Notes: generated by a model from the sequence alone, not told the origin. A DNA stretch of 64,000 nucleotides from Malacoraja senta (GCA_038087875.1 CM075984.1:33356001-33420000); one strand, 5' to 3'; positions 17,701 to 20,700 are shown, counted from the first letter of the stretch. Program-made: numbers and translations.

Positions 17701-20700
17701 TGTGAAGTTAGTTACTCAATGTATACTGTCCCAGAGCCTGCTGCAGAAAGTGAACAGATGTCATCGCGGGCAGTAAAGTCCCCCAAGTGCATTGGATTGG
17801 GCAGGTGAAAAATCAGAGACCCTTCCAGGTTCTTTGCCTCACCTTTAAACCCTGGCCACTAAGGTAATTATCGTTGACGATTTTCAAATCACCATGGGGA
17901 TAAAGTCATGCAAGGGTCATCCTAATGGGCCTGTCCCACTTATGCAATTTAATGCGATTTTTTTGGCGACTTACCGGCACCCGTCATAGTCACAGCAGGT
18001 TGCAGGAAATGTTTAACGTGTTGAAAATCCAGCGACAACCAGAACAAGGTACGATGCTTGAGCGATCATTGAGGATACCCAGCGAGGGAGTGGAGCGACC
18101 AAGTGGGGGGAGGGTGTGGGTGGGGGATGCCCCCCCTCCCACGTAGAGACTTTTTGACATTTGATGTATTAAAATCATGTTTTAGTGCATTGTAGAAGTA
18201 TGATTTCAATGTTTTTTGTTTTAAGTATTTTTAAGATAATGTAGGGCCTACATGAGAGATAGGAGCAGGTGATTATTATTTTTGTTATTGCTCGACATCC
18301 AAAAACTGTGGGATAATAATACAGGCCTTCCCCCACCTCAAAAAGTGGGTGGATATATCCCCCATACCCCCAGCCCCCCAGACCCCCCCCCCCGATCAAC
18401 GCCAGTGCCTTCCACGGTACAGAAAATTTAACAAAAAACTTTTAAAGGTGTTATAATTTCAAGTGCAATTTTTTTTGTTTGTAGTTGGAAAATGGGACAA
18501 GAAATAATCATAACATTTCCTGATTTTGCAAAGTCATACAGATTATGTTTTGCTCAGGGGAAAAAATCTGAGTATTTTGAAAGTATGTGTTCTCCTTTTG
18601 ACGTATATTTCATTTTGATTTGAATTTAGAATCATCAAGCCATGACATTAATAAAGGGGGTATATGTTTGTGGAAACGTTACTTTTTTAAAAGTAAGACT
18701 TTCGAGAAATCTAAAATGCATTAGAAATATACATTTCAATGCACTGAGTCTCTTGCCCAGAGTAGGTGAATCGAGGACCAGAGGACAGATTTAAGGTGAA
18801 GGGGAAAAGATTTCATAGAAATCTGAGGGGTAACATTTTCCACACAAAGGGTGATGGGTGTATGGAACAAGTTGCCAGAGGAGGTAGTTGAGGCAGGGAC
18901 TATCCCAACATTTAAGAAACAGTTAGACTGATACATGGATAGGACAGGTTTGGAGGGATATGGACCAAAAGCAGGTATAGCTGGGACATGTTGGCAGGTG
19001 TGGGCAAGCTGGGCCGAGGGGCCTGTTTTCACACTGTATCACTCTATGACTACATTATACCTCCACCATGCATGAATGGTTCAAAATCAAGTGGTCGAGT
19101 TTTATTGCCATATACTCAAGCATAGAAACATAGAAAAGAGGTGCAGGAATAGGCCATTCAGGTCTTCGAGCCAGCACTGCCATTCAATATGATCATGGCT
19201 GTTCATCTAAAATCAGTACCACTTTCTCCATATCCCTTGATTTCGCTAGCCTGAAGAGCTAAATGTAACTCTCTCTTGAAAACATCCAGTGAATTGGCCT
19301 GCACTGCCTTCTGTGGCAGAGAATTCCACAGATTCACAACTCTCTGGGTGAAGAAAGTTTGTCCTCATCTCAGTCCAAAATGGCCTACCCCTTATTCTGA
19401 AACTTTGACCCCTGGTTCTGGACTCCCTCAACATCGGGAACATTTTTCCTGCAGTTACAGTAAGTGAAAATCTAGCAGGCAAGCAGGATGCTTTCTCCAA
19501 CCACTCCCAGTTGAAGGCCACTATCTTCCACCGCTTCTACCCAGTGCTTGGTATCTACTTCCAGCAGCCACTGGTTGTCCTCCAGGATGCACCGAGCCAC
19601 AGCCTGGTCCATGCCGGTCACCAGGGAGAATTCGGCGCAGACTTTCACGGCAGTGGTGCAACGCTTCCGACGCCTCCGACGGCCCGGGACTCTTGCACTG
19701 AGGCTGCTCCATGGCCGGAGGTGCAGCGAGCGACTCACCAGCCCGGGCTCCCCGTCCACATCTGCCCCCACCACTGCTTCTGCTTCCATCCCACCCTCCG
19801 CCCTGGCTCTCCAACACCCACGACCAGGTTGCTCAGAGCACAGCAGCGCCTCGTCCAAAGCCGGAGACATTGAAACATGTTTAGCCAAAAAAGTGTGGGG
19901 GGGGGGGCTGCAGCCCCCCAGCTCCGCGGCCCATGATGCGGCCTGTATGATCGTGAGTAGTGGCCCAATGAGTCGTACCTTTTTCTGGTCGCCGCTGGAT
20001 TTTCAACATGTTGAACATTTTCGGCAACCTGCTGTGACTATGACGGGTGCCGGCAGTCGCCGAAAAAAATTGCGTAAGTGGGACAGGCCCATAAGTGGAT
20101 AAATTGTGAAGCTGTTGGATCAGCTGCCTCCGGTATGATTATATAACATTTCAGAGAGGTGCAATCACACTGAGATGAGATGATGAATGAAAACACGTGC
20201 TGTACTAAACAGGCATAGCAGTTTAACAGATTCCTGGGAGTGATCGCAAGTGGCACCATATTCTACTGGATTCAACTATGAATAATTTTTAACCATCACT
20301 TGCATTATAGAATATGATTATAAATGGCAGTCCTTCCAGCCATGCAGGCAGCCTTATCCAATAAATATCAGCACTACTTTTCTACTCGTGTTTTATTTGC
20401 GGCATGTTGCAAAATATGGTGTAAGGTCACTGATCAGACACCAGTCTGAAGAAGGGTCTGAAGAAAGGTCTCGACCCGAAACGTCACCCATTCCTCCTCT
20501 CCTGTCCCACTGAGTTACTCCAGCATTTTGTGTCTACCTTTGATTTAAACCAGCATCTGCAGTTCTTTCCTACACGATCAGACACCAGTAGCCATTATAA
20601 TCCATTACACTCACAATTATCTTGCCGATTCCTCCATCCACACATTCCCTGTAAGGATTTTAGATTTGCTTCTTGTTACCCAGTGGCACTGTCAGAATCT

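Follow-up and report, generated by a model that had tools for sequence, protein, structure and literature searches.

A high-copy Pack-TIR transposon family carrying a probable TDP2 5′ segment, one copy of it nested within a Harbinger-type MITE in a transferrin intron of Malacoraja senta

Capture of gene fragments by cut-and-paste transposons is well documented in plants, and the animal cases are mostly single-copy and small. Plant Pack-MULEs and other Pack-type elements take up gene fragments between transposon ends and amplify them. The family described here does the same, but its host is an animal and it belongs to another superfamily, without the 8-10-bp target-site duplication (TSD) and the long terminal inverted repeats (TIRs) of MULEs. 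A survey of 100 animal genomes found 370 Pack-TIRs, 4 of them multicopy, with a median cargo of 224 bp, and does not mention cartilaginous fish (PMC8277862). Animal Pack-TIRs such as Pack-hAT-N8_XT of Xenopus tropicalis, which carries the 5′ untranslated region (5′UTR) of CAPSL, have a parental-gene insert and TSDs formed after capture, as does our family; the example shown there has 3 copies, however, against at least ~1,100 copies and a cargo of ~1.1 kb here (Tan et al. 2021, PMC8277862). In function, the family comes nearest to HelibatN3, a Helitron family of vespertilionid bats which carries the promoter, first coding residues and splice donor of NUBPL and traps exons (PMC4778049). Here we analyze a stretch of 64,000 nucleotides of the Malacoraja senta genome (GCA_038087875.1 CM075984.1:33356001-33420000, hereafter the window), in which a copy of an apparently non-autonomous TIR transposon carrying a TDP2-like exon lies within an intron of a transferrin-family gene.

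The original prediction for this locus, made from the sequence alone, was a Pack-type DNA transposon unit at 17926-20091. Inverted arms, a TAA on either side of them and a UBA-like peptide encoded in a CpG-rich segment were indeed found where it had placed them. The interpretation that we favor, and that is very probably correct, has three layers. A MITE (miniature inverted-repeat transposable element) of about 340 bp would first have inserted at a TAA in the transferrin inter-lobe intron, before four related species diverged. A long-form transposon of about 1.9 kb would then have landed in the centre of this MITE, and a later deletion of about 90-110 bp at the left junction would have taken about 55 nt of the MITE along with the left TIR of the transposon. 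The transposon family itself would have copied about 1.1 kb once from the 5′ end of TDP2, between 13-nt TIRs (CAKGGGCCGCRGA), and after this capture would have amplified to at least ~1,100 copies, some of them as passengers in a larger hAT-like repeat; the copies would since have decayed neutrally, losing CpGs. The features of the locus are as follows.

17923-17925, no strand: left TAA TSD of the MITE, read directly.
17926-18058, plus strand (inner edge uncertain, 18055-18068): left half of a palindromic Tourist/Harbinger-type MITE; BLAST identity of 82-85% to more than 20 copies, aligned with intact copies.
18059-18738, minus strand: transposon-only backbone of the long form; matches positions 59-708 of the element at locus L006 at ~91%, no homology to the TDP2 loci.
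18739-19558, minus strand: putative captured TDP2 intron-1 sequence with interspersed repeats A (18739-19052) and B (19121-19453); collinear with host locus L059 at 6239-6710, 6730-6758 and from 7048 onward, at 79-88%.
19559-19712, minus strand: TDP2 exon 1 homologue with ATG at 19712-19710, UBA-like coding sequence and donor GTAGAT at 19558-19553; aligned with the 2 host loci and 32 other copies.
19713-19870, minus strand: putative captured CpG-rich sequence preceding the TDP2 start codon (5′UTR or promoter side); homologous to L059 as far as 7760 and to L061 as far as 1817.
19871-19935, minus strand: transposon-only terminus, a G/C hairpin (GGGGGGCTGCAGCCCCCC) and a 13-nt TIR, ending …CCGCGGCCCATG at 19935; the end is conserved in complete copies, flanks diverge, and the TIR matches at 12 of 13 positions.
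19936-20091, plus strand: right half of the same MITE as the left arm; aligned at 88-94% identity with other copies.
20092-20094, no strand: right TAA TSD of the MITE, read directly.

The two arms occupy 17926-18054/68 and 19941/73-20091 (the repeat search paired 101 nt at 85% and 29-nt tips at 93%), and the left one starts with TGGGCCTGTCCCACTT. A search with the left arm as query returned 1,105 first-look candidates in the M. senta genome, and all 40 that were scored matched at E <= 5e-29 with 81-90% identity over most of the arm. Eight loci hold an intact MITE of 305-346 bp, made of two arms and a short palindromic centre, with WGGGCCTGTCCCACTTA as its ends, TWA flanks and no cargo. Among the nine aligned MITE copies, the window copy included, all have TWA on at least one side, which is the 3-bp duplication of PIF/Harbinger elements and concerns the arms only. 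Complementarity between the window arms is 92% over 120 nt, gaps excluded, and that of the eight intact copies spans 84-94%; joined together, the window arms yield one MITE less about 55 nt of its centre-left part. On these alignments, the window arms are the two halves of one ordinary Tourist/PIF-Harbinger-type MITE of ~340 bp when intact. The outer arms share with Tourist-like PIF/Harbinger MITEs the short palindrome, the TWA 3-bp duplication, the GGGCC-type termini and the thousands of copies, and show no notable difference from them; we take their ends to resemble Tourist termini. Two independent inverted insertions, which the original prediction had kept as a second option, are unlikely, as complementarity between the arms is on a par with that in intact copies, and the arms share the TAA and make one MITE.

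In the first option of that prediction, a Pack-type PIF/Harbinger element with the TAA-flanked arms as its termini took up the TDP2 fragment and carried it here. This option is in keeping with the TAA on both sides, with the inverted arms of about 130 nt that enclose the cargo and with the 3-bp TWA TSD. However, the eight intact copies of the arm family consist of arms only, the arms are absent from 31 cargo loci (130 kb) save one 40-nt fragment, and the cargo has termini and TSDs of its own. Cargo and arms were thus not found as a joint travelling unit at other loci, and we consider capture by the Harbinger arms highly improbable. As to the age of the MITE, short-read contigs of the same species are identical to the window over 17300-18048 and 20067-20477, and contigs of three related species, whose unique flanks are 4-7% diverged, pass from the flank into both arms. 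This indicates that the MITE predates the splits between those species. The empty site that the original prediction proposed to look for was not seen in the contigs of the three related species, which stop within the repeats and therefore bear on the MITE and not on the inner insertion.

The interior of the locus belongs to another family. Positions 18069-19935 match loci L004, L006, L009, L010 and L012 end to end at 88-90%, without the arms, and at other loci the cargo-bearing element has its own TIRs and 5-bp TSDs and no MITE arms. The TIR of the family is 13 nt long, and the two ends (CAGGGGCCGCAGA and CATGGGCCGCAGA) match at 12 of 13 positions. Every complete copy opens with CAGGGGCCGCGGAGCG and closes with the equivalent of window position 19935, and the flanks diverge directly outside. 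Perfect 5-bp TSDs surround independent copies (TGTAG, GCATA, TATAG and AGAAA) and three further pairs differ by one base (GTGAA/GCGAA, GCAAC/TCAAC and CATAG/CACAG). Since the TSDs differ between copies, transposition occurred after the capture. The family has a long form of ~1.91 kb, to which the window copy belongs, and a short form of ~1.35 kb without the equivalent of window positions 18240-18825, whose joint was found in contigs of all four species. Elements total 1.3-1.9 kb and their sole long open reading frame (ORF) is the cargo, with UBA-like scores below the Pfam cut-offs (the backbone was scanned non-exhaustively).

With TIRs at both ends, copy-specific TSDs and a host-gene segment whose parental locus lacks the transposon ends, the interior at ~18058-19935 can be classified, on sequence comparison, as a separate nested copy of an apparently non-autonomous TIR transposon of the Pack-TIR type. 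Arms and interior are both members of high-copy families, and their arrangement is therefore not due to chance. The original prediction had also entertained a nested hAT-like element with ends at ~18407 and ~19934. The idea of nesting and the right end (19935) were borne out, but not the left end, because family homology is unbroken from 18069 through 18407, and the 5-bp TSD departs from the hAT norm. A composite origin from two MITEs via an internal "pseudo-end" at ~18340-18410 was tried and rejected, with a local alignment score of 18 against 13.7 ± 1.9 for shuffled sequences (maximum 23).

The terminal features bear on the superfamily of the inner element. Some hAT subgroups with 5-bp TSDs are listed in Repbase. 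The TSDs of our family are 5 bp long and no 8-bp match, as would be expected of hAT elements, flanks any copy. The left end, CAGGG or CAGTG, fits the YARNG type of hAT termini with G at the third position, a hAT signature (PMC1131882), and the right end reads CATGG. A 5-bp TSD is the hallmark of Transib elements (PMC1131882), and the family could on that account be taken for a Transib-type (RAG-like) non-autonomous element. Transib termini, however, start with an invariant CAC (PMC1131882), and those of our family start with CAG or CAT and show no heptamer-spacer-nonamer. Moreover, a genome search for RAG1-like transposase copies with PF12940 returned one locus, a 1,044-aa open frame which is the RAG1 gene itself. 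We regard a Transib affiliation as scarcely credible.

About 40% of the sampled cargo copies are short forms with identical flanks, inside a larger repeat of at least 3.1 kb (L045:1-2850, matching parts of L005, L036, L038, L040-L043, L048, L050 and L052). The right end of this repeat, …CGTGAGAGTTGGCAGCTCTG, is a hAT-like terminus, its left end was not reached, and its six ORFs gave no Pfam match. The presence of short-form copies within this larger hAT-like repeat points to a second vehicle spreading the TDP2 cargo. At L009:1379-1435 only 15 bp separate another cargo element from a 40-nt terminus of the MITE family to which the window arms belong. Counting this one, 2 of about 12 independent cargo-element insertions are within or next to Harbinger-type MITEs, a hint of a target preference. 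Two loci hold, a few hundred bases away from the main copy, another TDP2-cargo fragment that is incomplete and inverted (C1:113372726-113372979, in L040, and C9:41837217-41837521, in L038).

Helitrons create no TSD, have 5′-TC … CTRR-3′ ends and insert between A and T. Spread of the copies by segmental duplication or by Helitron-type rolling-circle capture, instead of TIR transposition, would agree with the identical flanks just described, and bat Helitrons are the classic case of gene capture that includes a promoter together with a first exon and donor (PMC4778049). This reading is contradicted by the distinct 5-bp TSDs of independent copies, which also have TIRs. The ends read CAG… …CATG with no 5′-TC … CTRR-3′, the copies, over 1,100 in number, are scattered across many contigs, and the copies with shared flanks sit in the larger repeat with its own hAT-like end. 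Taken together, duplication or a Helitron mechanism has almost no likelihood.

The cargo resembles TDP2, a DNA-repair gene. Positions 19873-19474 are open on the minus strand and encode the UBA-like peptide, in a segment with 65% G+C and a CpG observed/expected ratio of 0.66. On this ORF the Pfam models UBA_4 and UBA_8 score below their cut-offs, and in the PDB the window peptide matches, at E < 0.01, only the human TDP2 UBA domain (6q00, E 0.002). In the M. senta genome, C19 holds two pairs of TDP2 catalytic exons on its minus strand (4698195/4695022 and 4638803/4630940), and all top PDB matches of the genome-derived catalytic exon are TDP2 (E 8.5e-12). Upstream of the first catalytic exon of each paralogue, at distances of 14 kb and 7.6 kb and in the same orientation, there is a block that matches the cargo and contains an intact 180-nt first exon (C19:4712337-4712516 and 4646439-4646618) with the donor GTAGGT. 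The 60-residue host peptide, which starts with MEQPQCKS…, matches the human TDP2 UBA domain (E 5e-4), and its next PDB match is the same region of nematode TDP2 (E 0.4). Host TDP2 exon 2 was not located. The gene has two tandem paralogues, separated by about 66 kb (C19:4630940-4712760, minus strand, L054-L061), with first-exon blocks that are 94.6% identical.

Paralogue a is collinear with window positions 18739-19873, including repeats A and B and the unique spacer between them. Both repeats are also found alone elsewhere, and probably resided in the TDP2 intron before the capture. In L059 and L061 host homology ends at …AAAGCCGGA, about 65 nt before the right end of the transposon, which leaves about 670 nt of backbone on the other side, and the C19 blocks are without both transposon ends. 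Judged by this collinearity, the cargo of about 1.1 kb is an unprocessed genomic piece that spans the CpG island ahead of exon 1, this exon together with its splice donor, and a portion of intron 1. In this the original prediction was right: the exon corresponds to a piece of the host TDP2 5′ region on a DNA transposon, and the search with 19465-19880 that it proposed gave 2,008 first-look candidates.

The direction of transfer could also be reversed, the UBA-like exon being native to the transposon and copies upstream of TDP2 having been recruited as its first exon. In line with this, the tree of copies and host loci is unrooted and the match of the exon to human TDP2 UBA is weak (E 5e-4 to 2e-3, with both Pfam models below cut-off). 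However, in the whole PDB the matches at E < 0.01 are confined to the human TDP2 N-terminal UBA region, followed by nematode TDP2 as noted above, which indicates that the exon predates the transposon family. The absence of both transposon ends from the C19 blocks also speaks against reversal, as do the intact 60-codon frame and donor of both paralogues, while the copies decay neutrally and bear a derived 24-bp deletion. We judge recruitment by TDP2 very unlikely and infer that the sequence moved from host to transposon.

Among 1.84 billion representative proteins the cargo ORF had a sole match, P0001 (110 aa, 69% identity), and none to TDP2. P0001 is another copy of the transposon, located on a 4.6-kb ENA contig (ERZ25070917; L053:3983-4554), and falls inside the transposon clade. 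Sequencing runs guessed to be RNA hold 4-13% of cargo words.

Two differences from both host loci are common to all 33 copies analyzed: 24 bp are deleted in frame (between 19668 and 19669), and a D has become an E ahead of the donor. The unrooted maximum likelihood tree sets the two host loci apart from the 33 copies with 100/100 support and joins the copies in a star whose median tip length is 0.038. Gap-free identity is 92.1% between copies, 95.8% between copies and their own column majority (96.5% for the window copy), 92.6% between that majority and the host and 94.6% between host a and host b. These comparisons indicate that all copies stem from one capture. By a rough clock, the capture would predate the tandem duplication of TDP2 and the burst would predate the splits of the four species. 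As for copy number, 40 of 40 scored candidates from the 19465-19880 search matched at 85-93%, nearly all at full length, and a 30-mer of the exon had 1,117 genome matches at up to 3 mismatches, against 0 for the reversed control.

The copies decay neutrally. The frame from ATG to donor is still open in 15 of the 33, and substitutions at codon positions 1, 2 and 3 number 78, 79 and 96, so near to even that they give no sign of selection. CpG sites mutate 4.2x faster than other sites in the copies, and the CpG observed/expected ratio is 0.89 for the column majority, 0.87-0.91 for the host and 0.72 for the mean of copies. This CpG loss suggests methylated, silenced copies, of which it is the expected pattern.

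The window copy is a dead and immobile relic, judging from three lesions: it has no left TIR, it has a private 2-bp deletion between 19641 and 19642 which shifts the frame, and its donor is weakened to GTAGAT. It begins at family position 34-59, and other copies extend beyond its backbone, out to the common left end. A single deletion of ~90-110 bp across the left junction probably removed both the TIR and the missing ~55 nt of the MITE, and insertion of the MITE probably preceded that of the inner element.

Several points weigh against the three-layer history. The left junction is unclean, with "gagcgatca" at 18060-18068 fitting either element, and with the left TIR gone no 5-bp TSD can be demonstrated for the window copy. 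No autonomous partner or transposase was found in a search that was incomplete. The left limit of host homology (18739) is the edge of repeat A, and this capture breakpoint could reflect recombination between repeats. The host-to-transposon direction is drawn from conservation of the UBA N-terminus in human TDP2 and not from a rooted tree or an outgroup genome. The TDP2 gene was first located with 50 human catalytic-domain residues and later confirmed with genome-derived sequence, and the C19 first exons were assigned to TDP2 from genome sequence.

A six-frame Pfam search placed the locus in its gene. The transferrin-family exons detected in the window are the following.

20761-20937, minus strand: transferrin-family exon that ends the N lobe (Pfam PF00405, 270-328), the upstream edge of the host intron.
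30250-30429, 28229-28378 and 24140-24316, minus strand: the other transferrin N-lobe exons detected (Pfam).
10379-10513, 8231-8395, 5775-5930 and 4304-4495, minus strand: transferrin C-lobe exons (Pfam).

The element thus lies in the inter-lobe intron, between the exon at 20761-20937 and the next one detected, at 10379-10513, with the cargo in the orientation of the transferrin gene. The original prediction had placed it in intron 8. It does follow the exon ending the N lobe, but calling this intron number 8 presupposes the canonical exon plan. Around the window, the transferrin-family exons belong to several genes arrayed in tandem (window 4304-30429; C8:33268278-33386429), and further transferrin-family loci lie at C8 10.80 Mb and C4 11.97 Mb.

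Nothing else in the stretch comes near the abundance of the interspersed repeats at 18739-19052, 19121-19453 and 20456-20575. In four species, contig depth summed over them exceeds that of the flanks by a factor of 1e5 to 1e6, and the unit at 20456-20575 shows many inverted joints. None of these three repeats matched tRNA or Rfam models, nor did scans of 17000-21000 as a whole.

Among Pack-TIRs the family stands out for its copy number, the size of its cargo and its host lineage. Like HelibatN3, it has taken up the 5′ end of a housekeeping gene and reached about a thousand copies, and an intronic copy in sense orientation, as in transferrin, has the layout of an exon trap (PMC4778049). The two differ in mechanism, HelibatN3 being a rolling-circle Helitron and our family moving by TIR cut-and-paste with 5-bp TSDs, and the cargo is larger here, with 60 codons and ~0.8 kb of intron. 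They also differ in that our family is known here from DNA sequence, and the CpG decay suggests silencing. By analogy with HelibatN3 it is conceivable, though rather doubtful, that this is by far the most amplified animal Pack-TIR so far and that, with a CpG-island promoter region, a start codon, a UBA-like coding exon and a splice donor in every copy at the outset, it may act, or may have acted, as a dispersed promoter and first-exon trap. If so, genes with sense intronic copies would give N-terminally truncated or UBA-fused transcripts, and the transferrin copy would yield a C-lobe-only form.

The transferrin intron of the window itself simply holds ordinary nested transposon debris, and in genome annotation the copies give rise to spurious "TDP2-like" gene models. 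At the level of the family, these data suggest that a vertebrate TIR element can take a promoter and first-exon module and spread it more than 1,000-fold across related cartilaginous fishes. The known parental TDP2 locus makes the limits of the capture, its age and the decay of the copies measurable, and the family offers a natural setting in which to see if CpG-island promoters scattered together with a splice donor become silenced or co-opted.

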